From Nageia nagi (taxonomy: Eukaryota > Plantae > Pinophyta), in the NCBI GenBank assembly GCA_050084985.1, contig JBITNC010000002.1:3844001-3908000 (forward strand): a stretch of DNA of 64,000 bases, read 5' to 3'. This document shows positions 5,128-33,154 of the stretch, in pieces. Under the pieces are notes generated by a model. That model was given only the letters and a program-made list of their open reading frames with translations. It searched no databases and had not been told where the DNA came from. Both the position numbers and the translations under genes were made by a program. Numbering within the stretch: position 1 is the stretch's first letter; each line of letters begins with the position of its first letter.

Positions 5128-5130
<3 letters not shown>

Positions 5131-5165
<35 letters not shown>
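5131..5165. repeat. (AT)n microsatellite
   Basis: About 17 perfect AT units. Confidence 0.98.
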
Positions 5166-5167
<2 letters not shown>

Positions 5168-5887: not shown

Positions 5888-5974
5888 AGGCTACCAATAA
5901 GGTTTGGTTGGTATATTATTTATGCACTTCTAGGCTATCAATAAGGTTTGGTTGGTGTATTCTTTATGCACTTC
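5888..5974. repeat. Two-copy ~44-bp tandem duplication
   Basis: AGGCTA(C/T)CAATAAGGTTTGGTTGGT(A/G)TATT(A/C)TTTATGCACTTC twice. Confidence 0.9.
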
Positions 5975-7099
5975 CATCCATAGGTAATAGTAATTAAAAT
6001 TCTAAAATAGTAAGTAAAGTTGAGTAGATGTATTGTACTATAACCTACCTTTAAACAAATTCTAAAATACAAATAAAATTGCCTAATCTCAAGTAAAAAA
6101 AGAATTTGCACTACATAACCTTACATAATTCCAAAATAGAATGTAATCCCAACATAATCATACACTATAACCTCTTAATAATAAGGGCAATAACATCCTC
6201 ATCGGTTAAGCTATAAAATACTATGATAAATACTTGAAATATTATTTACTAAGGAGATATTAAAGGAAAACTATGCTAAAATTATATGACCCTTTAGCCA
6301 TCTAGAAAAGATCTATTTATAATAATTTACATGATGGAAGGCTTAATGATCCATTTCTATCCAATCTAAAATTATCATTCAAATATTAATAATCCACTTC
6401 ATGCTAGCCTGATGCTTTAATTTGATTGGATAATAGAAGGAATTTTATTTAATGAAGTAGGTAGTGGGATATCTGTTGAATTCAATATGACATCCTTATA
6501 TTTTTTTTGCTCTATGTTAATTAATGGCAACATCTTTTGGATCCCTAAAACATAGGCATGCTTATCTTCTCGTCGTGTCTTCTTATTCTTCAACATGACT
6601 CCTCTACCCATTGTTAGATCTTTTATTCTCAAATGTTGACATCATTGCTCAATCTTTAGTGACAAAAAATAACTCTTCTTCATATGTCTCTTTTTGATGT
6701 TTCAAACTTCTTTGTCTACTTCCCTAGTTTCTATGTGCATTTATTGATGTTGTGGCATGAATTTACTTGCAGTAGATACATAATACATTATTTTATATAT
6801 TTATAAGTATTTTTAAGTTTATTTATACTTGACTATTATTTAAAATGAACCTAGTACTTTATTTTGTAGCACTTAGCTAAAAAGTACATTGAAACATTTT
6901 GGCAATAATATAAGGTTGACTTCATTAGTGTCTTGAATGAACTCTTGCTCCTTTCCATAAAATGATTGGGTGATGTCATTTAACAACCTAAAAATTATTA
7001 AGAAAGGAAAGAGAGGAATGGGAATATTATAAAATATGATTGAGAAGATAGAAATAGAAATGAGAAGAGGGAAAAATAAGATATCTAATGGAATACAAA

Positions 7100-10000
7100 A
7101 CAATGCTAACAATGTTAATTTGTTAATATTTCTAATGACTCTATGGGAACTTCAACTTGCTAGAGTTGAATCTAAGTTTTCCTTGCCTTGTTTATTTCCA
7201 TCTTGATCTTTTACATGTCCATCTTTATTCTATGAATATATTGGGGCTAGCTCTTGGTTGTGTTGTTCTTCTTTACCCTCAATAATGGAATCTTTCATTT
7301 TTTTTTATAATCTCATTAAAATTCATAACCTCTTGTTTTGAAAATGCTTGTCATTTTTATTCAAGTTTCAACAACTCAACCATTTCATTTATGTCCTTAT
7401 ATATTATCTAAACATTAGAAATTTTGTAGATAGACCCCAACTAATTCCTAAAGTTAATATATGCTTTCTAATTTATTGTTGAAATTTTTTATTAATTGAT
7501 CTTACATAATATAAGTATGTATATTTTTACCCTAATCTTGCATAATTTTATCATTTTTTGTAACATCATTTGTTTCATCCTAGAAAGGTGGTAATGATAT
7601 TTCAACTACTAAGTCAAAGGATAGATGAATATCATCTATCTTGGATTGTAGATTCTCACCTACCTTTTCCCCTTGCTTAACTAAGTTCCCTATGATCATT
7701 ATGTCTATCATTTATTGTACCAATTATGTTATTAAAATTTTTGTGATCTCTAGTATTTCTTTAATATTTTCCTCATCCAACCAATCTCTTATATCTTTTA
7801 TCCCCTTTGGTATGCTCAATATGGGCTGATTCTTATGTTTAAAAGACTAGAATTTATTCATAACCTCCTCCATCTCTTCTTTGTTATTTTTATCTTGACC
7901 AACTAGGGGATTCTTTCCATCATCTCATTAATGAGGGAGATTTTTATTTTTATGGTCTATGAGACCAAAAATATATCTTTTGCTAATTGATGTTGATATT
8001 ACTTTTTTTTTTGTAAGCTTCCCAATAAATTACTCCTCTTTCCCTTCACCTCTTTCCCTTCACCACCATATTTCAGATTTGTCTTCAAGTCTTCATTTTT
8101 CTTTTCATTTGCCTTCAACTTGGCCTTAATTTGTTTCATCACCTTTTTATGACTTTGATTAGCATCTTGCATTTCCTTTTGAAGATCTTCCATATATTGG
8201 TGAAATTCCTTATTTCTAGTTTTCTCCTCTTTATGATCCTCATTATATTAGATTAACAATTTTTTAGTTTTGATCAACTTAGCTTGAGATGCTTCAAGTT
8301 TTATTCCAATGGTATCCATAATATTTAATCCATACATCCTTTAGTCAAGTACTAGTGCTTGTTCGAGAGGAATATCCATTATGGTAGATGGTATTTGTGG
8401 ATCCTCAATTACTAGAATACAAATAATAGATGGTTTCATTTTGTTAATATATTTTTCCACTGCACTAAGTAATCTCACATAATGATCATTAGACTTATTC
8501 AGTTGTTGTACCAAGAGGCCCTAATCAAAACTTAGAATTAAACTTTTATTGAATATATTAGAAACTTGTTAGGGATTATACTTGGAAAAATATTTATTTG
8601 AATGAGAGGTAAATTCATGGATTATATTAGATCAAAATGCTTGATTGTATCACCAATATGATTCTCTCGATACTTGGTGATCATATTCTTTAGTAGCCTC
8701 CATAGTACCTTCACTAGTAGTGATATGTTGTGCATCCTTTTAGGTAGTGGAGTCCTTTTTACCTTGATCACATGAAGTTTATTGTGTACCATCTTGGTCC
8801 ATATTGTATTTTTACTTGACATCCTTTTGAGTCTTCTATGAATCATCATCATATTTCTAATCCCTTGGTGAGATACGTGGGCTATTCTATTATGAAGAGG
8901 AAGATACTAAAAACAAATGTACTTAGGTTGAGAAAAAAGTCTTAAGTAAAGGTTGAAAACAAAGTCTTTTCCTAGGGTTTGTGTTGGTGACTTATCACAT
9001 CCTACATTTCCTTAGCTACTTAGGGAGTTTGGTTCTAACATAGTTAGTCTATTAGGAAGAAGAAATATATATAATAATGTTTTGGGGAGGTGGAGTAGAA
9101 TATACATTGACATTTTTTATAAATGCTTTCTTTACAAGAATAGTTGTAGTTTTGGAAGTTTCCTTACCTTTTTATATAGGTTTCCTTAGAGATGTTTCTT
9201 ATTTATTCTTAAGAGTATTTTATCTCCTCAATATCTTGTTGCTCCCCTTCTTCTTCATATTCTATCAAAACAACTCTAATTCTTTATCTTGGAGTAGGCT
9301 TGGAAGAAGTTTTGCAATATTTTATTTCTCTTTTTAACATTTTTATCATCTTTTGTATTAATTTTAGGTTGTACATCATCCTTTGAGTAAGGATATTCAT
9401 AATGGACTTCTTACCATTATTTATCTTAATTGAAAAGATGAAATTTAGTCCCCCTTGACCATTTGCATAATGGTATATTTGGTATCTAAAAATGTTAAAT
9501 CACTCAATCTTTGTATTTGATCACTTAGACTCCTTTAGTTTTGCTATCACATTATTTTTAAGTGACCATGTTTTTTATATGTATTCCCTTCCATTTCCTC
9601 ATGTTTAGGAACTCTTCAATTGACATCCAATATTTATGAATAGAACTGTGTTGAACTATGGGACTCTTACAACCTTTTCATTCATCATATTTTTATATTT
9701 TTTAATTTATTTTCTCTTTTCATGCCTAAAACTAAATGCATGAGACTTATTTTCTTTACAATATTAGTCATCAAATGTTGGGAATCATAATAGGGTTGTG
9801 GGGCCTCTAATTCTTTCAAATAAAAGGTATTCACCATATACTCCTTGATGGGTTCATTCTTTTGATGCTTATCAACCATTATTGATGGAAATTAAATCAA
9901 TAAAAATAATAATATTTTTAGTTTTACCCCAAAAATAAATTGCATCTTAATCATGTCTATTTTCCTAGCAAACTTTATATCAAACAAATCTAGGGTTAAA

Positions 10001-10600
10001 AAAATAGGAAGAATGAATGTATTACTAAAGAAATCATACTTGAATATCACAATAATATCCTTATTATAATACCAATATGCTATATTTGCATATTTTTTAT
10101 AATAAAACCATGAACTTAGGGGATATTCTATCAATTTGTATCTTGGTCAAACTATTCATAGTTGGTTCAAAGAAACAATTGATGAAATCATGATTCTCTA
10201 AATTATAGTTGGTTCAAAGAAAAATTTGAGAATCCAAGGCATGAAAATAGCCTAAGATAAGATAAGCTTGATGATAACCTAAAGTAGGATGACCAAATAA
10301 AAGTAAGAATACAAATATATATGATGAACTAACATGATGGAGAATGGAGGATTTTAACAAGTGTAGTGATATCCAAAAAGGTGATGACATTTTCATATGA
10401 GACTTGAAGTTGATGCCCCTTGTGTTTAATGCCCTCAACATAAAGTGGTTGAATTCAAATTTAAATAAATCTAATATATATATTTCCCTAACATGATTTA
10501 ATCTATGCATATTATATACATGATTACTATGGTATAACACTACAGGTGGTATTTAAGATAACTTGTAATGCTTTAGGTAATCTCCATTCTTTGAGATTAC
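7100..10600 (-). pseudogene. Degenerate extra ORF(s) downstream of Gypsy pol (accessory, coiled-coil rich)
   Basis: Co-oriented minus-strand ORF fragments (7999-8193 K/E-rich coiled coil, 9685-9879, 10214-10540) 3' of pol. No domain recognised with certainty. Confidence 0.4.
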
Positions 10601-10619
10601 TAATTACCAACCATCCATT

Positions 10620-12192
10620 ATATCTTCCATGTTAAATAAGTTATTATGTAATATACACTCTAACATGAATCAAATTTAATATACTCATTAGGCTTGAGCA
10701 ATACTAATCCTATTTTAACAATAGGTCTCCTTGCCAGAATATTACCAGGAAAGATTTCTTCTTTCCAAATTATCTTTTGATTAGTTTTTTATGATCTCAA
10801 CAAGATGTATAAGATTGATTTAATTTCTCTTTAAGATAAAATAACATGGTAATTATTGAATCCAATTTATTTAAAAGTTTTAGGACTCCCCTATCAGTTA
10901 AAAGAATGCAATTATTTTAACTTCCATGGCCATATATCTTACATAAAGCTCTTCCTCTAACCAATTTTATGGGCTTTATCTCAACATCAAACTAGATTAT
11001 CTTAGAAGCCCTTCCTAATTTCCCTTCATAAAGTTTTTTCTTGGAGAAGATAATGTTTGATATATGAGCATATCGATTACACCAAGATTTTTCTTTGTAA
11101 ACATAATGTTTAAACTTTTGAAGAACTTTCATAATAGAAAAAAAATATTTTTCTATAAATTTGTGACTAGTTTCATAATCATATAGAGTCTGAATGTGAA
11201 ATGCAACTAGATGCTCTTCTCTTTGTTTATTTTTTTAGGTTTTAAGGATAGTAATAATACTTTTATCAGAGTTGTATGCATACAAAATAAAATCTTTTGT
11301 AAAATCATGATTCTTGAAAATTGGTTCCTTTGTAACACAAGGGGAGTACTTGTTAGAAAATGGTAAGTACCATATGCAAAAAAATAGGGGGTATTTTTAA
11401 TATCTAGTTTATTTAGAGGTATATTGGTAAGTATTTTATAAGGGTAGGGGTAGGGGTATTAAAAAAATAGGGAGGGGATAGGGATATTTTAAAAAAGTAG
11501 GGTTGGGGTGGGGTGGGGTGGCAAGGAGGGGAAAGGGGTGCATAGTTGAGGGTGGGGGATTGGGAGGAGGTGGTAAATTTTAAAAATAAGAGGGTTAAAA
11601 TATTTAAAAGGGAGATGGTAAATTTTAAAAATAGGGGGTTTTTTATGAAGCCCATTTTCATATGTGTTTTGAAGGCTTTCTACTAAGTGACCCCCCATGC
11701 TTTGTAAGTACTTGCTTGATTTCTTCAAATTCATCCTTGACTTGTTGAGATAAATAAAAAGGTAAATATTTCTTTAATATTGTAGTAATGGGTTATACAA
11801 TTCTTGACCAATCATTTATAAATCTCCTAACAAAGTTAATCTATCATGAAAATGACTCCAAATATTTCTTATTTGATGGTAATGAAAAGTTATTGATTTT
11901 TATTACTTGATTAGGATAAATTTATAATCATTCTTCAAACACCATATTACCAAGCAACCTTCCTTGATTTACTACACATATAGACTTATTTGGATTTATG
12001 GAAATGCCCAATTGCTTACACTTTTTAAAAATTTTCCCTAGGTGTTTAATGTGAGATTCTTAACCTTTAGAGAATACAATGATATGATCAAGGTAGACTA
12101 GGATGATCTTATTTATCAATTCTATAAATTCTTGATCTACTTTTTGGAAATGAGAATTGATATTTGATAACCCAAAGGGAATCCTTTAGAGA
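10620..12192 (-). pseudogene. Degenerate Gypsy pol (RT and RNase H)
   Basis: Minus strand: RIPFGLSNI (~12160-12186), ILVYLDHIIVFS (YxDD region), KCKQLGISINPNKS, EEHLVAFH...YETSHKFIEK...KFKHY (RNase H), DVEIKPIKLVRGRALCK. Many stops and frameshifts. Interrupted at 12193 by a CACTA end. Confidence 0.85.
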
Positions 12193-12479
12193 CACTATAC
12201 CAAAAATGGACTTTAGGGGTAGGAAATTTGAGGCTTTTTGGTGAGGTAGTTTTAAATTGCATCAATATTGGGTTTTAGTGGTAATTTTTATGGGTTGGTG
12301 TAAAACTACCACCAAAACCTATATAAGGATGTAGGTCAAATCCACCCCTCAATTTCAATAAAGTTTTTTAAAAAAATACATGGAGAACTTATATGACCAA
12401 CAAAAATTATTAAGAATTGAGTTTTTTTCAAATTATGGAGGTGGGGAAGTAGAGAGAGAAATGAATATTTTAAGTTTTT

Positions 12480-12660
12480 TGCAATGATGTTCATAGCTAT
12501 CTCAAGATAGCCTACATAACTAATAAGGTAAATAATGCATGTATATGATTCATTCTAGGAATAATACAATAAAAGTCTTCAATGTTGTTAACATATTCAC
12601 AACCTTCATTCATTGTACCTACATGGTTGCATGCAAGTAGAATATTATAAAAGTTGTTCT
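12480..12660 (-). pseudogene. PLS-class PPR fragment (L2-S2 motifs)
   Basis: Minus strand: ILLACNHVGTMNEGCEYVNNIEDFYCIIPRMNH/TCIIYLISYVGYLEIAMNIIAK, matching the consensus vLsACsHaGlvdeG..yF..M...y.i.P..eHy.cmvdllgraG.leeA. Confidence 0.85.
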
Positions 12661-12889
12661 ATTAGGGTACTTGGAAAATTATTTGGCAATTCTAAGTTTG
12701 AAGAGATGAGGGAGTAGAGGAGAGGAGAGATGGGGTGAGGTAAGGTGACTAGAGACCCTGGTAGATATTCTTCCATATTTTTACATGTAATCTTATCAAA
12801 CAATTTTTGTTCCTTGTATTCTTACATATTTTGTAAAATAAGGCTTAACACCTTATAATTACATTTAGAGTAAAAGTATTTAGAGTATT

Positions 12890-13690
12890 TTTCAAAAAAC
12901 CCATTTTTTGCATATCTTGTAATTATTGTAGTCTTTAAAAATATGAATTTGCATCATGAATCTTATCAAGCACTTCCTAGAAATTATGTATTCTTCCATA
13001 TTTTGCATACATATCTTAGGTCCTTTTATGTGTATTATGCAATCATTACAGACCATGATACTATGTTTGCATCATGCATCTTGTTAAATAATTCCTTGGT
13101 TTTATGTATTCTTCTACATTTTGCATTCCTTATAATAGGGCCTTTTTTAGAAAACCCATTTTATGCATATCTTAAAATCATTGTAGACCATATATTGCAT
13201 CATGCATCTTGCCAAATAATTCCTGAGCCTTATGTATTCTTTCATATTTTGCATACATGTTTATCAGGATATTAACAATCATGTCAAAATCATAACATTT
13301 AATTTACAAGCACCAAGTAGATACATACACACACGTAATTCATGTTTTATGGGTATTTTGGTTGTGAAGTTCAAATCTCTCAAAATAATATTCATGACTA
13401 AGAAGGTCAATAATGCATGTATGATGATTCATTCTAAGAATAATGCATCATGCATCTTGTCAATTTCCCAAGCCATGTGTATTATTCCATATTTTTCATA
13501 CATGTCTTAGGCCTTTTTTCAAAATCCTATTTTTTGCATCTTCTACAATCATTATAGACCATGCAACTATATTTCCATCATTCATCTTGTCATATAATTC
13601 TAATGCCTTATGTGTTCTTCCATATTTTTCATACATATCTATTAGGCATTCAAAGCCACAACATTTGATTTAAAAGAACCAAGTAGACAA
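12890..13690 (-). repeat. Array of PPR-derived repeats
   Basis: Repeated unit reading LINMYAKYERIHKAQELFGKMHDA on the minus strand (e.g. 13195-13267). Also HHTCIIDLLS...LNFTTKIPIKHELRVCMYLLGACK at ~13290-13440. Confidence 0.85.
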
Positions 13691-14269
13691 TTTCATACAT
13701 CTAGTTCATGTTTTGTTTGAAGAAAATTTATTTCCTTGATTTTAATGTTGCAATATTTTATAAATTTGGAGAAATTCAACAATGTAAATTCACCTTCCAA
13801 TAATTATAAAAATTAGGGAAAAATCAAATACATGCATGGGTTTTAAAATGTTCCCTTAGGCACATCCCTCTAATTTTAAATTTGCAATATGCTGGTGAGA
13901 TAATAAAGTCTCCTATACTCTTCCCTAAAGTAATATATCTAAAGGAAATCTACATTAAAATATGGATCACTAGACTAGAAAGGGCTTTTGGTAGCATTCA
14001 TAAACTACCACCAAAAGCATTTTTTGATGGTTATTTGACTACCTCCTATTAGCTTGCCACCAAGAGTACCCCCTTATGGCATTGAGTAATTTACCCATCG
14101 ATATATGGCACATAAAACACCATATAAGATTATAAAGAGGTGGTTTTTAACTACCACACTATATTTTAAGGGGTTTTTAAATTACCTCTTAATAATTACA
14201 ATGAAAAAAGGGCATAAGCTGGAAGCATTCTTCCAAATGGAAGAATGCTTTTAGGATCTACTACCATAT

Positions 14270-14480
14270 GTTACCTAAGGAAACCAAGCTAGATCATAGT
14301 GAGCCTAATTAAAGTATTGTATATGGGATCTCAAAGGATGCCCTAGTGGATTTGACCAAGAATAATGCTTCCAAGCTCTACAGCCCTCAGTTACCCAAGG
14401 TACATAAGCTCGATCATAGTGAGCTCAATTAAAGTGTTAACCATGGGCTCTCAAGGATGGCCTAGTGGATTTGATCAGTC
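14270..14480. repeat. Two-copy ~120-bp tandem duplication inside the CACTA
   Basis: GTTACC(T/C)AAGG...AAGCT(A/C)GATCATAGTGAGC...CCTAGTGGATTTGA at ~14270 and ~14390. Confidence 0.8.
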
Positions 14481-14779
14481 ACTTTTCACTTGCAAAATTA
14501 TAATACTTAGCATAATTGAAAATAAATTTAACTACGAACATAAATAATAAAATTATTTGCACACCATTTCATTATCAAGTAATTACACATAATTATGAAA
14601 GTATAATAGTTTCCTCATACCTGATATCTATAGTGTGGATCAATTGTTTGCTTAATACATTAATGTGAGTTTTTTATATATTTGCAAGATAAGTATTACA
14701 AGCATGTTTTTATCAATTTACAACTTTTGGATTAGTTATAAGGGGAACATGGTGTTACAAGGTGCAAGTAGGTATTCTT

Positions 14780-15290
14780 TTGTAGGAAATAATCTTGTAT
14801 TCTTCTCCATTTTGCATATATGTTCATGCCTTGTATTTTTCTATATTTATTTAGAAAACCCATGTTATGTGTATCTTATAAAATAAATTAAGCTCGAGTC
14901 TTGTGTATTCTTCCACATTTTTCATGTGTCTATGGGCCTTTTCCAAAAAAACTATTTTGCATGTATCCTGTAATCATTACAAACTATGAAACTATGTTTG
15001 CATCATTCATATTATTAAACAAATCCTAGTTCTTATATATTCTTCAATATTTTTTATATATGTCTATCAATACACTCACAAACATAACATTTAATTTACA
15101 GAAATCAAGTTGATACATCCACCCACCCAATTTAGGTTTATGGGTATATTTCCAGTGAAAGTTCAAAGCTCCCTCAAGATAGCCTGCATGAACCACAACA
15201 TTTGATTTAGAAGCATCAAGTAGACACATCCACATATCCAATTAAGAGTTTATTGTTTTGGCAGTGAAGTTCGAAAGCTAAGTTCCCAAA
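14780..15290 (-). repeat. PPR-derived repeats in the left arm (inverted copies of the 111-bp unit and MYAK units)
   Basis: ORF 15044-15241(-) MWMCLLDASKSNVVVHAGYLEGALNF is the reverse complement of the 18780-19810 unit. Confidence 0.85.
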
Positions 15291-15844
15291 AATAATTTCA
15301 TGGATTTCAATGATTAGATGTCTTTACCCCTAGGAGAACCTAAAGGAAAAATCATGAATTAGAAAAGTCAAGGCTATGTACATTTCTTCAACAATATTCA
15401 TAATGTTACAACACATGATCTTTCATACAAGTATCTTGGGGGTAAAGACATCCAATCCAAAATATCTCAACACTTGGATAAGCAAAGCAATTGTTAAACC
15501 CATATGATTGAAGTGCATCATATGATATGATATTATGAAATAAACTAAATAAATCAATATATGATATGAAATAAACCAAACACACTATATATGATATGAA
15601 ACCTCATTGAGTGATAGAAGCATCAAATATGCTATCTAAAACCTCCAAAAACTTCATACCTCTCATTGAAAGATATAAATAGAAAAAATGATATGATGAA
15701 AATAATGGAACAAGTTGTGGGATCCTTCATTTCTTGGAAAATGATATAATTGTTCTCTTCTTTACTAATGGTTATTTTCAATTGTGTTATGAATTGCATA
15801 TCCTTGTTGTATCCATGAATTGTATATCCTCTAGTCTTTGCATT

Positions 15845-16390
15845 TCATGAAACTATGTTTGCATCACATCGTTTCAAATAGTTCTAAGAACTTGTGTATT
15901 GTTCTACATTTTGCATACATATATATTAGGTCATTCAAAATCATAATATTTAATGCAAAACCATTTTGAACTACTATTCAATAGATGTCCATACCTTCTT
16001 CTAGAGATCCCATGGTACCACATGCTAGAAGAATGCTGGCAAAGGTTACAAAGTTTAGCTTTACATTTGATAATTGTATCTTCTTAAAATTATTTAGAGT
16101 TAAAAAAAAAGAACTATTTTGTGTATATCCTATGATCATTACATTCCATGAAACTATGTATGCATCATGCAAATTAAAGAGTTTAAGGGAATCCTTATTG
16201 TAGCCATGAATTACATATCCTCCAATCATTGCATTCCATCAAATTGTGTCTGCATAATGCATCTTTTTAAATAATTCTAGACCTTTGTGTATTCTTCCAT
16301 ATTTTGCATTCGTGCTTATCAAGGCATTCACAACCACAATATTTGATGAAAAACCATTTTCAACTGCTCTTTGATGGATATCCATACCTT
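15845..16390 (-). pseudogene. Captured PLS-class PPR gene fragments
   Basis: GMDIHQRAVENGFSSNIVVVNALISTNAKYGRIHKGLELFKKMHYADTI*WNAMIGGYVIHGYNKDSLKLF, joined to VSWNVMIIGYTQN...FVTFASILLACGTMGSLEEGMDIY (ORF 15978-16229). Confidence 0.9.
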
Positions 16391-16494
16391 CTGCAAGAAT
16401 CGTTCATTCTACAAAAAGCCCATTTTATGTGCATCCAACCCATAAGATCTTGCAACTTAGAGAAGGTATATAATTATTCAACCTATATAGTCTA

Positions 16495-18210
16495 AGTACA
16501 TCATATGATATGAAATGATCTAAATGCAACATGCATATGGTATGAAATTAACCAAGTGCACTATATATGATATGAAATGAATTAAGTGCACTATATATGA
16601 TATGAAATGATTTAAATATACAATCATATGATATGAAACTCATGAAGTGATAGAAGCATAAAATATTTTATTATCTAAAACCTTCAAAAAATTTAGACCT
16701 CCCATTGAAAGATCTAAATAGACCATGTGATATGGAATTTTATAAGGTCAAAAACTGGTCCAAAAGTGGTAAGTTGGCAAAAACATGCTTGTAATGCTTA
16801 GCTAGACAGAAAAATATGTGATTGCAGAGTAGATTCCATGTTGTATATACAAAATGATGAGATAAAAGCAATGGAAAATGTTATGGTCTACTTCATATGT
16901 TCTGAAATGATGCAACTATACCATATGATGTGAAATGACCTAAATACATTATATGATATAAAAAAATGTTACGAGATGATCTAAGTATCTTTGAAACCTA
17001 TAAAATAATGAAATATTTTATGGGATCCTTTATTTCCTGGTAAATGAAATAATTAAGGCTCTCCTTTACTTGTAAATATTTGCTAATTTTATCATGACAT
17101 AATTTGGACTAAGTATCAAAAACTAGTCCAAAAGTGATAAGTTGACCTCATTTACCATATGTTATGAAATGATGCAATTGTACATCATTTAAATACATAA
17201 ATTTTAACCTTCATAACCATTTAAGCTATCTTGAGAAATGATTTAATTCATACCTCCCGTTGAAATATATAAGTAGAACATATGATATGAAATGATTTAA
17301 ATTCTTATCTCATCTCATCTCCTCTCGTCTCACCTTATAAAATGCACCTTTGTCTCCTCTTATCCCTCACTTGGAAAACTCAAAAAAATCAAAATGTCAA
17401 AAATATTCCAAGTGCCTATCTAAGCTCCTTGTAAAATATGGAATAATAATACAAGAGGCTCATGAAACTGTGTCTACATAATGCATCTTCCACATTACAA
17501 CCCATGAAACTATGATTGCATCATGCATCTTCCATATTTTGCATACATTTATATCAGGTTTTATGTTCCATTTCAGCTTTTTAAAAAGTGTATCTTGGCT
17601 ATTTGGATGTATCTACTTTGTTCTTGTGTCATTAAATAATTTTTTAAATTCAAAAACTAGTCCAAAAATGATAAGTGGGTCTCATCCATCATATGTTTTG
17701 AAATGATGCAACTATGCATCATTTAAATGCATAAAATTATTGACCTTATTTTCCATGAAAAATATCATGAGAAATGATTTAATTCATACCTCATACTAAA
17801 ATATCTAAATAGACCATGTGATATGAAATGATTTAAATATAGTACCATATGATCTAAAATGATCTACATGCTCCAATAATAAATAATCTAAGTACATCAT
17901 ATGATATGAAGTGAATATCCAAATGTGCCATATATATGATATGAAATGAACTAAGTGAACCATATATATGATAATAAATGATCTAAAAAATAGTTCAAAA
18001 GTAGTAAGTTAGCTAAAACATTCTTGTAATACATATCCAAACACAAAAAATATGTAGTTCTCAAGTGGATGTGTTGTTGTATATATAGAATGATAAGATC
18101 AAAATAATAGAACATGTTGTGGGTTATTTCATTACCTGGAATGTATAAAAAATTCTTTACAAAAAAATTATGATATGTGATATGAAATGATTTAAGTACA
18201 CCATATGATC
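16495..18210. repeat. Dispersed ~28-bp ATATGATATGAAATGA minisatellite-like units in the CACTA centre
   Basis: Clusters at ~16500-16640 and ~17810-17990, plus ~15515-15600 outside this span. Confidence 0.8.
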
Positions 18211-18779
18211 CAAAATATGTCTTGGAGAAGGAAAAAAATTGTTCAACCTAGAAATTTTCTAAGTATAAAAAATACTTAGCTTGTAATACTTTGCCAAAAA
18301 AGAAATTATGATATGTTGTAGTAGTATTTTATAGCATAATTATGTAATTATTGATCATTATTAAACCAAAAAATGAAATGAGCTTGAAATAAGAACTTAT
18401 TCCAATGAATCTTAATAGGTGAAGGAAATAAGATATATTTATTTGAAACAACATCAACTTCTGCTAGATTGACATCTGCTTCAACTTGTCATAATATAAT
18501 GTTATATAAAATACCATGTCCATATTGGATATCTTCTTTGATCCCTCATTGATACCTAGCCAAATCATACAAAAGGTAAAATTTATTTTTGATTCAACAT
18601 TCTTATAGATTGCAATAATTAGAGATATGCAATTAATGGCTACAATAAGGATGCCCTGAAATTCTAATGTAAGTATGCAAAAACATGTCTGTAATACTTA
18701 GCCAAACCCAAAATAATATATCATTCCCAATTGGATGTCATGTTGTGTAGATAAAATTATGAGATGAAAATAATAGAAT

Positions 18780-19810
18780 ATGGTGTATGGATGTATCTAT
18801 TTGGTTCTTCTAAATCAAATGTTATGGTTTTTGTATACTATCTTAAGGGAGATTTGAACTTCACTACCAAAATAACCCTAAACCTAAATTGTATATGATG
18901 AAGTGTATATTTGGCACTTCAAAATAAAATATTTTCATTTGTATAGGCTATCATGAGGGAGATTTTAACTTCATTACCAAAATAGCCATAAACCCTAAAC
19001 TAGGTGTGTGGATGTGTCTTCTTCGTGCTTCTAAATAGAATGTTATGGTTCATGCATGCTACTTTGAGGGAGATTTTAACTTCATTACTAAAATATCCCA
19101 AACACTTAATTGGGTGTGTAGATGTGTTTTCTTAATGCTTATAAATTGAATTTTATGGTTCATGTAGGCTATTTTAAGGGACCTTTGAACTTTACTACTA
19201 AAATACCCATAAACCCTAAATTGGGTATGTGAATGTATCTATTTGATGCTTATAAATTGAATGTTATGGTTCACATAAGCTATCTTTAGGGAGATTTGAA
19301 TGTCACTACAAAAATACCCATAAACCTTGAATTGGATGTGTCTACTTGGTGCTTCTAAATTGAATGTTGTGATTAATGTAGGCTATCTTGAAGAAGCTTT
19401 TAACTTCACTACCAAAATACCATAAACCCTAAATTGGGTATCTAAATGTGTCTACTTGGTTCTTCTAAATTGAATGTTGTTGATCGTGTAGGCTATGTTG
19501 AGGGAGCTTTGAAATTCACTAATAAACCTTGACTTATGTGTGTGGATTTATCTCCTTGGTGCTTCTAAATCAAATGGTGTGGTTCATGTAGCCTATATTG
19601 AGGGAGCTTTGAACTTCACTACTAAAATACTCATAAACCTTGAATTGGGTGTGTGGATGTGTCTACTTGGTTCTTCTAAATTGAATATTATGGTTCATGC
19701 AAGCTATCTTAAGGGATCTTTGAAATTCATTGCCAAAAAATCTTAAACATTGAATTAGATGTATTGATGTGTCTATTTGGTTCTTCTAAATCAAATATTA
19801 TGGTTCATAC
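18780..19810 (+). repeat. 111-bp tandem array (about 9 copies) derived from the PPR S2/E1 motif
   Basis: Anchor at 18811, 18921, 19032, 19142, 19253, 19356, 19466, 19566, 19677, 19787. Unit translates HAGYLEGALNFTTKIPIKPKLGVWMCLLGASKSNVMV. Confidence 0.92.
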
Positions 19811-20920
19811 TATTGGAAATTGTAATATAATATTTATCTCTAATATAAATTCACTTAATACTTAAAGTATCTTTAATATATCTTAAAAAATTAAGAGAAT
19901 AAATATAGAAATACCTTTAACCTTAACCTTAGGTAAAGGGAAGATTAAAGGATGAATTTCTTCTTATAAATAGAGAGGTACCCTTTTCATTATGTAACTT
20001 GATGAAGCATGGTAATGCTTATCTTATAGAGTTGTAGGAATGCTCTTGTAGGAGGCTTGTAGAAGAATTCTTGATAATTTGTAAGAGAGTTATCTTGTGA
20101 GAAAGTAATAGGAAGGATGGTTCAAAGTGAATATTCTCTCAAGAGTTGAAGGAACCACTATATATGATGTGTTATTATTTGTGTGATTGATTATTACTTT
20201 GCTAGTTAGATGAATGTTAGATTTGTTGGAGAAGCTTTAAGGATATCTTGGTTTATAGAGTCTTTCAATTCCATCAAGTGGTATCAGAGCCTTCCTTATT
20301 GTGGTCTCCTAAACTTTTTACTTAGTGATTTTGAGGTAACCCTCCTTAAATTTAAGGTATACCTATCCTCTAATATTGTTTCAATTTTATTTAAAACTTC
20401 ATTAGTTAATGAATTTCAATTTCTTATTTTTTGAAGTTGAAAGTTGATATCTATACTAACATATTTTTTATCTTGAGGATAATGGGTTCAAATTTAAGGT
20501 AAAATTTTACCTTAATTACATGTTAGTAGTTTTGTTAAATCTAACATTTGCTATATGGTTAGATTGTAAATCTTGTGATTTGATATCTATACTAGCATGT
20601 TTATGCTAAGAGTAATTGGTTAAGATCTAACATCTTATGTTAGAAACATGTTAGAAGTGTTTGAAGTTAGATCTAACATATGGTATATGGTTAGATTTTT
20701 AAGATCTTGAAATATTAGTGCTTCTAATTTTTTTTTTCTTATAGTCAAATCTAATATTAGATTCTAAAACTATGCTACGATCTTATTAAGTTTCAAGCTT
20801 ACAAAAATCTAATTTATGATTTTTGTAATAAAATTTTTTAGCAAGAAAGTTAAAATATTATCTTGCTATGTTTAACAAAGGTACAATTTTTTTTGTAACA
20901 AGTAAGGTTACAAAAGCTTG

Positions 20921-21007
<87 letters not shown>

Positions 21008-24000
21008 ATTGATGAAATTTTACCTTAAATATTTAAAAGGTATTTTTAAATTTAAGTCCTAAAGTTTTTTAAAGTATGGTGCAATTTTTAAGTAATGACT
21101 TAAATTATTGATAATTGCCTACTTTTAAGCATGGAATAAATTGTAACTTATATATAATTTTATATATGAGAATTTTTTTAATTGCTAAATTCTCACGTTA
21201 GTGCAAATTTTATTTATTTAAATGCATGATTATTGCTATGTGGATAAAAGTTCTCTTAAATATTTTTGCTTATGAATTTTTTGTAAATAGAGTAATTTTT
21301 TAAGTATCAAATATTTTATGCTCTACATTAAGTTGAAAAATATTTGATTAATGCCTTGGATAGCCTATTTAATCCTTTAGGAAAATTACTTTGATAATTT
21401 ACAAATTGTATGCCTTGGATAAACCTATTTAATCCTTTGGATATATTCATAGATTATGGTTATTTTTTATGCATATTTTTTATCAATATAACAACATTTT
21501 TTTATAAAATTTTGCCAAGTATTGCAAATCTAAAAAGACTAATGCAATATTTGATTCAATTTATAAATTGATAATTTTGTAAGGAAAAATTGATAATCTT
21601 TTTTTCTTATGTCCTATCTGAAATTAAAAATGTGAAATTTTTGATGAAAAAGAAAAAAAGAGGAAAGTAGCATTGTTGTTATGCTTATATTGTGCTTGGA
21701 TGGTTAATTTATGCACATAATTAATCTCCTTGGTTGGATGAAAATATATAGTGCTTGGATGTGCATAACATAGAAATTTAGGTTAATTTGTTTTTTCAAA
21801 TTTTGATATGCACTATCCTTATTAGTTGCAATGCAATTGTGCATGTTTATGCACATTGAAAATTTGTTATGGATGTGCTAGTGTTTGAAATGAAAATTTT
21901 AAACCTTATAATATGCACTATATTTTATTAATTGTATTTGCATTAATATTGCAAAAGACTTAGTGTGCTTAATGTGCATGAGATTATGAAATTGATGGCT
22001 AATATGAATATTTATTTTGTGCATATTATTTTGAAGTAAAAGTTTGTGCAACTATTTTTCAAATTATCTTCATTTTTTACATACATTATGTTGCATGAAA
22101 ACTTTTTGATTATGTACATATTCTTATTTGTACACATTGATCCTACGTTGTATGAATTTTTTTTTTTTGTTGAGCACAAATTTTTGTAGTAAAGTTTGTT
22201 ATCTTTCTCAATATTAGAATTATTGTGCATTAATCTTTAAAAATTTTATGCACATTGGATAATATACTTATTGGAGTGCAAAGTTTTAAAACTTACTTCA
22301 CAAGATTTATTGAGAATAATTCACTATTGATTACTTTTACATAAGAAAAATCTTTATTTTAAAACAAAAGTATACAAATACCTTTGGTAATTGTACATTC
22401 CTTTCTATGTTTGTAAAGATTAATAATTGCAACAAATTTTTTTAAATAAAGTTACTCTTAAGGGGGAGTATAAAATCCAAACATACTTCTATGTTTGAGA
22501 ATGTTCATAGATTAATGCCTCTATACTTTCATATTTTGAAAGAATATCCATGTTTATGGATTGATGCCACTATACTTCCATAGTTGGAAAGTTTATCTAT
22601 GTTTATAGATAAATTCCACTATAATTTTTGTTTGAAAAATTTATCCATGATGATGGATTGATTACCATATTGCTATTTGTTAGCAAGTTGTAGTAGATGG
22701 AGTAGTTAAAAAGGTTCACCTTTCTCCATAACTAAATTATTGAAGTGGTTAAAAAAGTTTGACCTTCTACATGATTGCACATTATTAGAGTGGTTAAAAA
22801 GGTTTACCCTTATCCAAAATTATAATTGTTTGATAAAATTTGAATTCATATTGATGGATTAATGCTACTAAATTTTACTATATGCTTTTTGACTAGTAGC
22901 ATAGTCAAGTTGGCATTTTATAGCTTGTGCATCTTAATGTGGTAGTCAAGATGGTATTTTATGGTTTGTTCTTCATCTATGCTACAGTATTATTGAAGAA
23001 CTTAAACCTATAAATCAATATGTTTATAAATAAATAAGAACTTATGTATATGGTTTATGCTTTGTTGTGTAAATCTTGGTTTCATGTTTGGTCAAGTTGG
23101 CATTTGTGGCTTATAAATCTTGATTTAGTCAAATGGTTATACCTTTAAAAATATTGACTTAGTAGTTTAGTCAAGATGGCATTTGATCATTTTTTACATG
23201 GTTAAGATAACATGGTCATATAAGTATTTATTTGGTGAAGTTGAAATCAAGGGGGATAATTAAATTATGAAATATTATGATATGATGACACCTTCATATA
23301 CCCTCAACAAATACAAAATAATGATTTAAAATAAACAAAAATGAAAATTAAAAATCAATTTTTTTATAAATATTGTTGATATTTTTTATATCCTTGGTTA
23401 AAAATGTATTTATATCACTTGGTTGATTGTGCATCTGATAGTATTGTGCACATATGATATTATTTATATCATGTTATGGTTGATACATTTTATTTAGTAT
23501 ACACATGTGATATATAGTTGAAGATATATATCATCTTTTATGTTGTGCATATATGATAACTTGGTATTTTTTATCAATTTATGGATGAAATATATCTCAT
23601 ATGAGTGTATATGATGTATCTAATTGATCTTATTTATGAGATGCTTGTAACTTGCAGGTTCATCTTAAGATTGCAGGTTACTTTGGGTATGCAGACTTAT
23701 GGAGGCTCATCATATCAATATATTATTAAATGACTAATTTTTTACAAAGAAACCATTTTTTAGTTAATAATTGTATTGTAAAACTATTTATTAAAATAGT
23801 TAAGTAGTTGAGCCATTGTAGAATCATCTATATTCTATTACTTTCTCAAATATGTAAAAGTTCCCATCTCCACTTGTATCTCTATAGAGAAGAACTCTCT
23901 CTTACTCTTTATTTTTGTTTTTTTGACTCTATACCCAATATTGCATTAAGGAGGAGTGTTGAAAATCATAATATAATATTATATAATATTTATCTTTAAT

Positions 24001-24427
24001 GTAAATTCACTTAATACTTAAAGTATCTTTAGATACCTTAAAGCATTAAGAGAATAAATATAGAAAGAGAAATAAATATAGAAACACATTTAACCTTACC
24101 CTTGGGTAAAAGAAAGGTTAAAGGGTGGGTTTCTTCTTATAAATAGAGAGGTAACCCTTTCATTATGTAACTTGATGAAGCATGGTAATGCTTATCTTAT
24201 AGGATCCTTGTAGAAGAATTCTTGATCATTTGTAAGAGAGTTATCTTATGAAAAAGTAATAGAAAGGATGGTTCAAAGTGGATGCACTTCCAAGAGTTGG
24301 AGGAACCACTATATATGATGTTTTATCATTTGTGTGATTGATTATTACATTTTTAGATGGATAAATGTTAAATTTTTTAAAGAAGCTTCAAAGAGATCTT
24401 GGTTTATGAAATCCTTCAATTCCATCA
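19811..24427 (+). mobile_element. Non-coding (LARD-like) LTR retrotransposon nested in the PPR array
   Basis: 5' LTR 19811-20276, PBS TGGTATCAGAGCC 20279-20291, PPT AAGGAGGAG ending 23956, 3' LTR 23957-24427 (TG...CA). TSD CATAC/CATGC. The ~3.7-kb interior has no recognisable gag/pol. Confidence 0.92.
20925..21002. repeat. (TA)n microsatellite
   Basis: About 39 TA units. Confidence 0.98.
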
Positions 24428-24930
24428 CATGCAAACTATCTTAAGAGATATTTGAACTTCAGTTCCAAAAAATCTTAAACCCTAATGATGTGTCTACTTG
24501 GTGCTTACAAATCAAATGTTATGGTCCACATAGACTATCTTGAGGGAGCTTTGAAATTCATTACCAAAATATCCATAAAACCTAAATTAGATGTGTGTAT
24601 GTATCTATTTGGTTCTTCTAAATCAAATATTATGGTTTGTGCATGCTATCTTGAGGGAGCTTTCAATTTCATTGCCAAAATACCCATAAAACCTAAATTG
24701 GATGCTTCTAAATCAAATGTTGTGATTTGTGTAGGCTATATTGAGGGAGCTTTGTAATTCAATACCAAAATACCCACAAATTGAATACACATAAAATGGA
24801 TTTTCTAAAAAAAGGCTCATAGATATGAAAAATATGGAAGAATACATAAGACTATATAATTATTTGACAAGATGCATGATATAAATATAGTTTCATGGTA
24901 TTGCAAGATACACATAAAAAGGATTTTCTA
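24428..24930 (+). repeat. Continuation of the 111-bp PPR array (about 3 copies) plus a plus-strand PPR MYAK unit
   Basis: ORF 24485-24757. 24816-24925 reads LIDM/KYGRIHKTI*LFDKMHDINIVSW/IARYT*KGF. Confidence 0.88.
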
Positions 24931-27900
24931 AAATGGGAATAAATCTCACACCATCTCACCTCACCTCCTCTCATCTTTCCTTGCAAATGTCTCTCTCTCT
25001 CCTCTAACCCCTAAGTTGGTAAACTCAAAAAAATTGAAATGGAAAAAATATTGCAATTGCCCACCTAATAACCCTGTGTATGCCTTTTTTTTCATTAAGG
25101 GTAAATTTATATCACCTCATTATTCTTTTGGGGGGAGGTTTAAAACTTCCCACCTAATAACCTTATGCATGCATTTTTTTTCATTAAGGGTAAATTTATA
25201 CCACCTCATTATTCTTTTATGGGGAGGTTTAAAACTTCCCAACAAAAAATACCACTAAATCATTCTAATGAGGTGATTAAAAATCACCTTAAAAAAATGC
25301 CTCAATTTTCTTGCCTCCAAAGCTCTTTTTTGGTCTAGTGGATGGATTCCTTCATGTGGATGATCATGATAAACCATCCTTTTGTAGCTTTAGTTAAATA
25401 CTCCATTGCCTACTTCTTTGCAAAAACTCGATTGTATCACATATCCTTGGTAGCTTCCCATTTAATGCATCCATATAATTCCTTAGTCCATATATGATGG
25501 TTGATTCTAGTAGCATTGTTGTTGCTTTAATTTAATGGTAGCCCATGAATGCCTAAGAGCACTATGAATCTCTATTGAAAAGAAGCCAAAAGTAGATTGC
25601 ATGGATGCAACTTGGTGTATTTCTACCCATTTGCACAAATGGACTCTTTTGTAGCTCGCAATATTAGATTTTATAGATCACATAATATAGAGATAATATT
25701 TATTAATTATCTAAGACTTTTGATGGATTTATATACGTTCTCTTTGAAGACCCATGTTTGTAACTAGATAAACCTTACAACTATAATGGTGTATTATTCT
25801 TTCAACCCACTGAGAAGACCATGGGACCATTCTTTGGTCCATGACGATGTGTGGTACCATAGATGCACTAAATTAAGATATTTTGTATGTAAATATCTAA
25901 AGCATGTAATTGTTATCTTTGAAGAACTATATGATATTATTTGAATAATTATATAATTCAATAATACAAATAGTAAGAAATATTATTGTGCAACTCTTTT
26001 CTATGGTTGTGTGCTATATTTTCCATTTTTGAGCTTGTATGTATGAGAAAAAAGTTATAAATATTTACATAGAGAATATGGACCAAAACCAAGGTGATAT
26101 TAATCTATTTGGTGGCATTTTAACTAGGTGGGTAATCATTAATATTACTTTTTATGCATTTTTTCAAGAGTTATTTGTCGTTCTCTCAAACTATCCCCTT
26201 TTCAAATCGATTTTCTTCTAGAGCTATAACTTTTTCTAGACATTATTTTAATGTGATTCTTTTTTTTTTTTGGATATTTAGTTTAAATATATTTTCAACC
26301 ATATATAGCATGCCATTCTTTGTTGCCAGATCACACTTACAATCCATAATTTTTGACATACACTTACATAGTTCTACTTAATAAATCTCATGAAGTATTT
26401 TACTTCCAAATAAGTTCTGACCCATATAATCTCTTATATATGCCCCAAGCATTCCACCATTGGATAATCCTTTTCATGTAATTTCTAATATTATATAAGA
26501 ATATATGATTTTTATATTGTTAAATATATTATTCATCAAGTTTTAGTGACTATATATGACCAAATTTGTTTCTTTCCCACACATAAATTTTGTCTTTACA
26601 TAGGTGTAGATGATAAAATGCAACCCTAATTGATGGCATAACGTTTTGCTAATATATAGTGCATCTACTTAACTTATAAATATGAAGGCTATTGCTTGCA
26701 ATTCCTAACAACATAAAAATAAATATAACAATAATTTAGAATGATAAATGATCAAATAAATAAATTAAATTACCAAATTATATTTATAACACATGAGATA
26801 AGGGATTAGAGAAATATACTTGTTACTTACTTGTTCAATGAAGATACTCCTATATGGAAGCTTATCTATCATTGAGCCTTATATATTTGATTTAAGAGTG
26901 ATATGATACATGTAGCCTAGTGCTAATGCTATGGCAACATTGATTTTGGCATTCCCAAGGATGTAAGCCATAAGGTCCAAAGTCAATGTTTTTTAAGCAT
27001 ATTCTAGTAATATTTGAGAGAATGGATAATGGATAGTTGTTTAATGTAACATATATAATATTTATAGGTGGTGCTTATAGGCATAATCAATATTTTTAAG
27101 AGTATATGCATGGTTATATCTTATCAAGATAAAATCTTCATCATCATCCCATGCATATGTTTCTCCATTTATAGGAAAAACAGATTACTTGAAAGCACCA
27201 TTTTATCGTAGCATTGCTACTTATGATCTTGTGCACAAATAAAGAGAAATAATAATAAAATTTTGCTTATATATATCAACATTTATTGATAATAATAAGT
27301 GATATAATGTTAATGTCTAGATCATAATATCTTGAGATTCATATAATAACTAATTTGGATCCAAAAAAGGGTGCCAAATTAGGTGTAAACTATAGGACTT
27401 GAAGTTTATCTCCATACATGATCTGAATTTTAGCCTTTATCTCTATCCTAGACCTATATATTATATTTCTTATTTCATAATCCAAAAAACACCATGTATC
27501 ATATAATATTATCCATAATATTTACCTAGAAAACTTCATTATATGTTTTAGGCCATAATATATACCTAGAGAACTTCAAATGTAGATTTGTAGAGATTTG
27601 TATCTCCATCTATGACATATGAGTAGTTGTTGAAAATATATCTTTAATATTTATGCAACCATGTATGACGAATCATATTTTGTAATTTAGATTTTATATT
27701 TTGTAGCTCTATCTTTTCTATGTGTAATGCATTGAGAGTGGGGATTTGGGGAATCAATCAATGAGTAAATTGGTAGAGAAGATGAAAGAGTTGGACATGA
27801 ATTGGATCTTTTTATGAAGGAAAATACCTACACAAGGTGTAGAATTAATTCATCATATAGAAGTCAAACCTACACATGATATTTGTATGCCTTATGGCTA

Positions 27901-31378: not shown

Positions 31379-33154
31379 TGTTAGAATTTGTAATGAAATA
31401 TTGTGAATATCTAAATTCCTTTTAAATTCAATTAATCACTTAAGGGTATGTAGATACCTTAAGAGATTAATTGAATTCTTTAATATGTAGACTTTGACTT
31501 TACCAAAGTGGTTAGTTGGTAGGTTGAAGTTAGGTGATACATTTAATGTAACCCTAACCTTACCCTTAGGTTAAAGGAAGGTTAGGGAGGTGCTCTCAAG
31601 CTATAAATACAGGGCCTCTCCTCTTGTAACATAACTAAGTTCTTGGAGTAAGATTACTCTACTAGTTGTGTAGGAGAGGAAGAGTATAGTTATAAGAGAG
31701 GCATACTTGAGAATTGAGATACTAGTTGCGGATGTACTCCCAAGGGGGGAGGAACCACATTACACTTGTGTTATCTTGAGTGATTGTGTTATCTTGTGTA
31801 TGATTGAGTTTCCTAGTCTTAGGTCCTTGAGGATTTGTTTAGATCTAGTTCAAATCCTTCAATTGACAACTTCACCTCTAAGAGGCCTTTTTTGATTGTA
31901 CATTCTAGACCTCCATGGTAAGTTTGCTCTGCATGACAAACTTGTTGTACAATTGTTATTATAGAGTGTTGATTATTTTATACCTCAGTGGTAAGTTTGC
32001 TCTGCATGACAAACTTGTTGTACATTTATACCTCCATGGTAAGTTTCCTCTGCATGAGAAACTTGTTGTACAAATTTTGAGCATATAATTAATATACCTC
32101 CGTGGTAAGTTCACTCTGTGTAAAGAACTTGTTGTACATTCTATACCTTCGTGGTGAGTTTGCTCTATGTGAGAAACTCGTTGTACAATTTTTATGCTCT
32201 ATTTAAAATCAACATATGTCTATATACAACAGGTGACTATGAGTGATGGCTTGGCATCTCTGTGATGACTTATAGTGCACCATTGATCATTTATTTGTAA
32301 GATGGCATTATTTGATTCTCTTATTTGAATATATGATGCATCTAACTGATTTTGTTCATGAGTTGATTGTAACATGCAGGATCTTCTTCAGAAATGCAAG
32401 TTACTCACCTTGTGAAAGCAAGCTCATGGAGACTCACATGTCAGCTTAAAGTTGATCGACTACTATGTACAGTGAAACCAGTTGTGGTTAATGATTGTAT
32501 TGTAAACCATTTTTTGTCAAATGGTAATGTAGTGAGTCTCATACTAGTTCTCAAAAAGATTCTCAAATATGTAAATGTTCTCATCTCCACTTGTATCTCT
32601 ATGGAGGAGAACTCTCTCTTACTCTCTCTATTCTTTCTTCTACGCTCTATCCCAATATTGCATTAAGGGGAGTGTTAGAATTTGTAATGAAATATTGTGA
32701 ATATCTAAACTCCTTGTAAATTCAATTAATCACTTAAGGGTATGTAGATACCTTAAGAGATTAATTGAATTCTTTAATATGTAGACTTTGACTTTACCAA
32801 AGTGGTTAGTTGGTAGGTTGAAGTTAGGTGATACATTAATGTAACCCTAACCTTACCCTTGGGTTAAAAGAAGGTTAGGGAGGTGCTCTCGAGCTATAAA
32901 TAGAGGGCCTCTCCTCTTGTAACATAACTAAGTTCTTGGAGTAAGATTACTCTACTAGTTGTGTAGGAGAGGAAGAGTATAGTTGTAAGAGAGGCATACT
33001 TGAGAATTGAGATACTAGTTGTGGATGTATTCCCAAGGAGGGAGGAACCACATTACACTTGTGTTATCTTGAGTGATTGTGTTATCTTGTTTATGATTGA
33101 GTTTCCTAGTCTTAGGTCCTTGAGGATTTGTTTAGATATAGTTCAAATCCTTCA
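31379..33154 (+). mobile_element. Young, short non-coding LTR retrotransposon (TRIM-like)
   Basis: LTRs 31379-31861 and 32673-33154 (TG...CA, about a dozen differences), perfect TSD GTTGT, PPT AAGGGGAG, 811-bp non-coding interior. Confidence 0.95.
31909..32187. repeat. Five ~43-bp interspaced repeats inside the short LTR element
   Basis: ACCTCCRTGGTAAGTTTGCTCTGCATGASAAACTTGTTGTACA at ~31909, 31982, 32030, 32096, 32145. Confidence 0.92.

Follow-up and report, generated by a model that had tools for sequence, protein, structure and literature searches.

Our analysis of a 64,000-nucleotide stretch of the Nageia nagi genome (NCBI GenBank assembly GCA_050084985.1, contig JBITNC010000002.1, positions 3,844,001 to 3,908,000 of the forward strand; the whole stretch is referred to as the window, and coordinates are counted from its first letter) indicates that positions 13968-25340 are occupied by a decayed, non-autonomous copy of a CACTA transposon whose right end carries a family-wide, tandem-amplified module derived from a pentatricopeptide repeat (PPR) gene. 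We put the probability of this explanation as a whole at about 0.8; it is solid as anatomy and speculative as regulation. The element would be one complete copy of the En/Spm type, adjoined in inverted orientation by the truncated end of a second copy, and both would be members of a gymnosperm family that is present in high copy number and whose left-type ends differ from its right-type ends.

The window is AT-rich (GC content ~0.30) and holds no long open reading frames (ORFs). Termini of the CACTA type, with short terminal inverted repeats (TIRs; CACTA...TAGTG), are found at 12193 (+), 13968 (+) and 25340 (-). The ends at 12193 (first letters CACTATACCAAAAA; 12193-12350) and 25340 (reverse complement CACTAGACCAAAAA; 25185-25340, minus strand, CACTAGACCAAAAAAGAGCTTTGGAGG...) can be aligned to each other over ~155 bp and are both of the right type. 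The end at 13968 (CACTAGACTAGAAAGGGCTTTTGG...; 13968-14200 with its subterminal region, plus strand) is of the left type, and its terminal region is colinear over ~200 bp with those at L014:3350, L008:1671 and L022:1614 (reverse complement), three of the related loci described below. The two kinds of end region are distinct from each other, and both are conserved across loci. Since the trinucleotide GAT on the 5' side of 13968 (13965-13967) matches that on the 3' side of 25340 (25341-25343), we take 13968-25340, with GAT as its target-site duplication (TSD), to be the complete element, which spans 11,373 bp, or 6,756 bp once a nested long terminal repeat (LTR) element is discounted. Subterminal structure is present at both ends, as an 89-bp repeat in two copies together with GGGAGGTTTAAAACTTCCC dyads on the right and as GGTGGTTTTTAACTACC-type dyads on the left. 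No transposase domain or ORF was detected in the element, the longest ORFs of which reach at most 110 aa, and this fits a non-autonomous copy. Paralogues of the flanks that would represent an empty site were sought within the window, and none was found. A TIR-like word at 41078 (one mismatch) was dismissed as a chance occurrence, its likeness ending at 14 nt and no profile matching it.

The sequence-only reading had joined 12193 and 25340 into a single 13.1-kb CACTA element bounded by mirror-image PPR arms and flanked by GAT. Both ends indeed face outward, are of the right type and remain alignable over ~155 bp, and the order of TIR, CT-rich piece and the two kinds of PPR-derived unit defined below (P1/L1, then S2/E1) is mirrored at the two ends. 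Nevertheless, we consider a single element of this extent improbable: AGA, and not GAT, precedes 12193; the complete left-type end at 13968 carries the flank that equals 25341-25343; the complete copies L008 and L014 each pair a left-type with a right-type end; and 13793-13992 occurs in few copies, in contrast to the surrounding family sequence. Consequently, the TIRs at both coordinates stand, the TSD stands only for 25340, and 12193-~13720 is the terminal 1.5 kb of a different, truncated copy in inverted orientation, for which no partner end was found in the window.

The PPR origin of the repeat units was established by tblastn with 150 full-length PLS-class PPR proteins, fetched with the ORF at 15978-16229, as queries and a cut-off of E<=1e-3. 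The window yielded 1,387 high-scoring segment pairs (HSPs) and the reversed-window control none, which shows that the strand pattern of the PPR matches is real and far beyond chance. Minus-strand matches lie at 12503-12673, 12738-13669, 14936-15307 and 15717-16634 (best E 2e-39), plus-strand matches cover 18946-19035 as well as 24662-24910, and two further minus-strand patches, near 60.7 and 61.5 kb, fall outside the element; the PPR-derived extents are 12469-17548 on the minus strand and 18597-24922 on the plus strand. This bears out the earlier claim of PLS-class motifs running in opposite directions to the left and right. Furthermore, the 83-aa ORF at 15978-16229 (-) matches the Pfam PPR profile itself (26.8 bits, E 5e-6). 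The best PPR relatives, four of which were checked, come from Taxus chinensis and Cryptomeria japonica, in keeping with a gymnosperm host.

Two units account for the arrays. The S2/E1 unit has a period of 110/111 bp (Tandem Repeats Finder calls at 18782-19808 and 24615-24780), and an nhmmer profile search of the whole window located 19 copies. The five minus-strand copies all lie left of 15300, and the 14 plus-strand copies all lie right of 18770. Several PPR proteins have the stretch GYLEE.LN.I.KMPIKPD.VVWMCLLGACR, to which the translation of the unit aligns over ~30 residues. In each of the five that were checked, the Pfam E_motif begins 0-2 residues after the end of this stretch, which identifies the unit as the tail of the final PPR-like motif (S2) together with the first E1 helix; the motif names used here reportedly follow Cheng et al. 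2016. The family-wide consensus, built from 69 units and 37 codons long, is VGYLEGALNFTTKIPINPELGVWMCLLGACKSNVMV. The P1/L1 unit, of ~105 bp and with the consensus MYEKCGRIHKT.DLFDKMHDANIVSWSAMIVGY, joins helix B of P1 to helix A of L1; its profile (nhmmer) matched 12 times on the minus strand, within 12900-17548, and once on the plus strand, at 24820-24922. A Pfam scan of the S2/E1 array ORFs, in the window and in related loci, returned no PPR domain; the units straddle motif borders, and their origin becomes visible only by tblastn against full-length PPR proteins. This silence of Pfam, together with the degeneracy of PPR motifs, could be taken to mean that the likeness is accidental, or that a PPR pseudogene cluster happens to lie between CACTA-like words. 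The contrast of 1,387 HSPs with 0 in the reversed window, the sharp borders at the termini and the TSDs leave that idea with a negligible probability.

The element holds scrambled PPR fragments full of stops rather than an intact PLS-PPR gene, and tblastn with the PLS-PPR proteins found no E2 or DYW matches inside it. Pieces of a DYW-deaminase-domain pseudogene with stops do occur elsewhere in the window, at 61548-61790 (-) and 60664-60789 (-), and match residues 754-853 of protein P0007 (E 1e-7). The sequence-only reading had described nearly all repeat units as PPR motifs, and this was too broad. PPR-derived DNA makes up 46% of the element proper, although 96% of the right arm after removal of the nested LTR element, and several internal repeats are not PPR-like: 119 bp in two copies (14240-14477), 30 bp in four (16503-16638), 89 bp in two (25060-25241), and the pairs 16484-16896/17804-18132 and 17092-17302/17629-17838.

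To place the module within its family, metagenome contigs of the Joint Genome Institute were scanned with an alignment of the S2/E1 array ORF and two unnamed 37-residue-repeat proteins, which gave 24 loci, 16 of them distinct. These loci have a GC content of ~0.30, and their matching segments are ~78-85% identical to the window. They contain 13 independent right-type ends, each with different flanking DNA, with the consensus CACTAGACCAAAAA.GG.CTTT.G.GG..AATTTGAGG; left-type ends are represented by four colinear sequences, one in the window and three in the loci. The module is present at 12 of the 13 right-type ends, where the inner 3 kb hold S2/E1 units in the ratio of 68 plus to 1 minus and P1/L1 units in that of 51 plus to 2 minus; the remaining family end, L006:8202, has neither unit in its inner 3 kb. 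At the 12 ends, the module reads toward the terminus in its coding sense, with 356-553 bp between its last unit and the terminus. From the inside out, it proceeds from the PPR fragment through the S2/E1 array and the P1/L1 units to ~0.5 kb of further DNA and then the terminus, and the number of units varies between 3 and 13. The different loci and the two arms of the window share the S2/E1-to-P1/L1 junction (...LLGACKSNVMV, followed by LSVLIDMYKKYGRIHK...), apart from one subfamily with a 70-nt deletion at this point, and such a common internal junction points to one ancestral capture. In L016, L006 and L021 the array begins exactly at the end of a colinear S1-P1-L1-S1-P2-L2-S2-E1a fragment (P0139 residues 148-418). 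Taken together, the relation to the termini, the common junction and the array abutting the fragment argue for a single capture of a 3'-truncated PPR gene, followed by tandem growth in place and spread by transposition. The earlier proposal that the PPR pieces form reiterated arms and not a single passenger is thereby supported, insofar as they are an inherited structural module of the family's ends.

Pack-CACTAs are known to acquire flanking genic DNA (PMC6379663), and PPR genes are very numerous, so that recurrent capture by different copies, as ordinary and independently acquired cargo, is conceivable. We nevertheless regard it as very unlikely, given the identical junction, unit boundaries and module order in 15 loci and both arms of the window. 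As for the family's abundance, contigs with at least 85% likeness number in the tens of thousands for the PPR parts in four DNA runs from three studies, far fewer for the termini and fewest for 13793-14192; these depth sums do not amount to copy numbers. In the same read data, 13793-13992 is the least repeated stretch.

Several points weigh against the explanation that we favour. The related loci were fetched with an S2/E1 array query, so the presence of arrays in them is by construction, and the independent evidence that they provide is only the relation of the arrays to the termini. Neither the element nor the 16 loci yielded an autonomous partner; the long ORFs of the loci belong to copia gag/pol, and none encodes a transposase. 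Therefore, the assignment to the superfamily rests on termini, TSDs and subterminal structure. While the element at L008 1672-8064 has the TSD TAC/TAC, the one at L014 3350-11484 has a decayed left end and is flanked by ATA and AAG, without a TSD. The mirror layout is not universal, as L008 has no inverted arm. Finally, the segment 12193-~13720 may be either the remnant of a host element or a neighbour truncated later; weak matches between L019 and the window at 26.6-27.4 kb hint that the complete copy was inserted into another copy.

The mirror-image arrangement itself deserves closer description. In the complete element, the minus-sense side consists of an inverted partial copy of the right-end module at 14737-15287, which lacks the outer ~0.35 kb of that module, and of the PPR fragment at 15717-16420; together they face the plus-sense module at 18597-24922. 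The inverted copy runs from a spacer (14737-14848) through two P1/L1 units (14870-15062) to two S2/E1 units (15083-15287). L022 has the same left arm (80% over 1.25 kb), and L014 has minus-strand S2/E1 units in its left half. Present in three of four informative copies and missing from L008, the internal long inverted repeat is a trait of a subfamily. Hence the earlier notion of mirror-image arms holds inside 13968-25340 and for L022 and L014, does not extend to L008, and had wrongly included the outermost left arm (12193-13720), which belongs to the other copy. The S2/E1 units of the window are equally diverged from one another within and between arms (74-78% pairwise).

It has been suggested on this basis that double-stranded RNA and small interfering RNAs (siRNAs) against genes for PLS/E-class PPR editing factors could come from the PPR-derived arms or from the family as a whole. 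Such a source could take the form of a hairpin locus resembling a proto-microRNA (proto-miRNA), or of trans-acting 24-nt RNA-directed DNA methylation (RdDM; 'epigenetic conflict'). Judging from DNA features, we think this unlikely. Inverted arms do lie inside one element, and copy abundance is very high. However, a distance of at least 3.3 kb (7.9 kb if the nested LTR element is counted) separates the nearest inverted arms, which are only ~74-78% alike. Their complementarity is unbroken over no more than 24 nt, and they have just six complementary 21-mers in common, so they do not form the close, highly complementary arms of a proto-miRNA hairpin. A scan of 12000-25500 at gathering thresholds gave no Rfam match, and the units evolve neutrally. 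In addition, the PPR genes known as small-RNA targets in angiosperms are mostly of the P class and not PLS. For the trans-acting form, the pseudogene at L024 6301-9016 has 181 of its 2,696 21-mers in common with the window and 12 modules taken together, and 36 with just the window, while the reversed control has 0; cross-matching with PPR genes would thus be feasible in principle. PPR loci yield phased siRNAs in spruce (PMC4651229), and gymnosperm donor genes of fragments captured by transposable elements (TEs) show higher methylation (PMC13477047), both in keeping with small-RNA effects. We still find it doubtful that the tens of thousands of units of the family would feed trans-acting small RNAs on PLS/E PPR genes that share 21-24-mers with them; these RNAs may be 24-nt RdDM siRNAs, or 21/22-nt species from read-through of the inverted repeat.

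Another possible function would be in cis, the arrays having been co-opted as subterminal repeats that provide binding or spacing sites for a TnpA-like protein or a structure aiding transposition. CACTA elements require subterminal repeats, and Chenopodium elements have tandem arrays near their 3' end (PMC8978399); the constant position, orientation and distance to the terminus at 12 of 13 ends would agree with such a role. On the other hand, descent from one master copy could suffice for this constancy, the number of units ranges between 3 and 13, no short conserved core can be singled out against the overall neutral decay, L006:8202 is without units in its inner 3 kb, and the left-type end of L008 works without adjoining arrays. 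We therefore hold a cis-acting role to be unlikely as well. Divergence from the consensus at the first, second and third codon positions is 0.134/0.137/0.111 for S2/E1 and 0.200/0.184/0.184 for P1/L1; without an excess at the third position, the units decay as non-coding DNA. Most likely, the arrays are selfish or neutral subterminal filler and serve no host function.

In the history that we propose for this transposon family, its ancestor would have taken up part of a PLS-class PPR gene without introns. This part, truncated on its 3' side, would have comprised ...S1-P1-L1-S1-P2-L2-S2 and roughly 13 codons from the start of E1. Two pieces of ~105-111 bp that straddle motif borders would then have expanded into tandem arrays, the internally repetitive helices having probably allowed unequal recombination or slippage. 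The resulting module (PPR fragment, S2/E1 array, two to three P1/L1 units, ~0.45-0.55 kb of subterminal DNA and CACTA terminus) presumably became fixed at the right end and was spread by transposition, with the transposase probably supplied in trans, although no autonomous partner was seen. In the subfamily that includes the window copy, an inverted partial module placed ~0.8 kb inside the left end would have created the internal long inverted repeats.

The remaining features can be followed along the window. Inward of the right-type terminus of the truncated copy, a contiguous L2-S2-E1a PPR fragment on the minus strand (12469-12680; ILLACNHVGTMNEGCEY..IIPRMNH.. then VGYLE..) matches residues 340-384 of P0139 (E 7e-7). 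A GA-rich piece at 12700-12760 (-) is the reverse complement of the CT-rich piece at 24940-25068. The arm of this copy (12900-13716, minus strand) consists of three P1/L1 units (12900-13260), an S2/E1 unit with an S2 piece (13291-13447), two further P1/L1 units (13443-13637) and a partial S2/E1 unit (13656-13716). Within the complete element, the 119-bp direct repeat (plus strand) is common to L014, L008 and L010. The longest PPR pseudogene fragment, 15717-16420 (-), has the order S1-P1-L1a-[P1b/L1a]-L1b-S1-P1-L1a with a few stops and includes the 83-aa ORF, and 16420-15760 translates as S1-P1-L1...S1-P1-L1 in a single frame. The central region (16430-18590) is mostly non-PPR, has internal direct repeats and no transposase ORF, and includes small P1/L1 pieces (17459-17548, minus strand) beside a third copy of the CT-rich piece (17307-17423, plus strand); the direct orientation of that copy in mid-element, next to minus-sense units, points to internal rearrangement. 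The right module starts on the plus strand with an L-motif piece (18597-18720; ..YAINGYNKDALKF..), continues as the first part of the S2/E1 array (18776-19810; ~9.5 units of period 110-111 bp) and, after the nested LTR element, as the second (24428-24781; ~3.5 units), and closes with the P1/L1 unit (YEKYGRIHKTI*LFDKMHDINIVSW). It is followed by the right subterminal region (24940-25241, plus strand), that is, the CT-rich piece and the 89-bp repeat.

The nested LTR element (19811-24427, plus strand; 4,617 bp) is foreign to the CACTA family and splits one S2/E1 unit. The right arm of the sequence-only reading therefore stands as a PPR array but not for this part. Its LTRs (19811-20276 and 23957-24427; ~470 bp) are 81-88% alike with TG..CA ends, and its TSD is CATAC/CATGC. 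The element is very AT-rich (GC content 0.23-0.25, with an (AT)42 tract at 20924-21007), has no long ORF and finds no match in the loci of the CACTA family; LTR-like relatives lie at 2502-3022 (-) and 32317-32770 (+).

The related loci also showed variation around the module. In L021 (9781-11049) the S2/E1 unit alternates with another PPR piece at a period of ~227 bp, leaving open frames of 153 and 178 codons without a Pfam PPR match. At L014 11484-11984 and L018 4333-4751, family ends abut P1/L1 arrays of other copies; elements thus lie within or beside one another's arrays, as they do at 12193-13967 of the window. Ty1/copia gag-pol remnants (Pol_BBD, gag_pre-integrs and SH3_retrovirus domains) flank the family array of L010 at 2754-6445 and 16940-20357. 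L024 holds, at 6301-9016 and 9246-10670, a PLS-PPR pseudogene in native order with a P-L-S periodicity of ~300 bp. The P1/L1 DNA profile finds every triplet of it (E 1e-13 to 1e-18), indicating that transposon units and gene motifs are still close at the DNA level. Two unnamed public proteins of 67-73 aa, P0156 and P0157, each consist of two in-frame S2/E1 units and are likely mis-called ORFs from this CACTA family.

The PPR module has consequences for genome annotation. Since P1/L1 and longer fragments pass Pfam PPR thresholds, and P0156 and P0157 have entered public collections, one TE family can distort counts of PPR genes, pseudogenes and captures in conifer-type giga-genomes. Inflation of gene counts, as proposed earlier, is plausible only for the longer fragments, such as the 83-aa ORF, given that the S2/E1 ORFs have no Pfam PPR match. 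If the trans-acting small-RNA reading were true, a transposon family would shape the methylation, expression and turnover of organellar RNA-editing factors in a gymnosperm. The family also offers a test bed for the 'epigenetic conflict' idea in which the target gene family has a clear phenotype, organellar RNA editing.

Among known systems, miRNA genes of the miR161/miR163 type are said to have arisen from inverted duplications (Allen et al. 2004). They resemble the arms described here in carrying inverted copies of target-gene sequence, which for miR161 include PPR sequence. Loci of that type, however, are short foldbacks with close arms and proven small RNAs, whereas the arms of the window, known here from DNA alone, are kilobases apart, decayed, transposon-borne and derived from the PLS and not the P class. 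Our literature search found no paper that combines pentatricopeptide with Pack-CACTA, describes PPR-derived transposon arrays or ties PPR fragments to CACTA end arrays, which does not prove that none exists. Pack-CACTA in Arabidopsis is a known case of gene capture by CACTAs (Catoni et al. 2019, PMC6379663). Like Pack-CACTA and other Pack-TYPE elements, the family is non-autonomous, has CACTA-type termini shared across the family and contains host-gene fragments, and it would be mobilised in trans. Unlike them, its gene DNA was not acquired independently by each copy but is an inherited module at the right terminus, arranged in tandem arrays with the same junction at 12 of 13 ends, and not variable cargo in mid-element; moreover, its elements are 6-8 kb long and one subfamily has an inverted second copy. 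TE-mediated exon capture in gymnosperms was surveyed in a Platycladus study, which reported ~400,000 captured coding fragments per genome and discussed an 'epigenetic conflict' between TEs and donor genes (PMC13477047); that survey is statistical, does not mention PPR and describes no single family with ends built from fragments. Also comparable are the 'Jozin' CACTAs of Chenopodium, which carry gene fragments acquired by capture and have satellite arrays close to their 3' end (PMC8978399), and a satellite derived from the CACTA tnp2 domain (PMC7320549). The former share with our family the superfamily and a tandem array near one end, and the latter the conversion of coding sequence into a tandem repeat. 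The arrays in those two systems are of unknown or transposase origin, whereas the array of the window family comes from a captured host PLS-PPR gene and, unlike theirs, still abuts its parent PPR fragment. The PPR-module CACTA family thus links gene capture with the birth of a satellite, and shows that a piece of captured coding sequence can turn into part of the structure of a transposon end.

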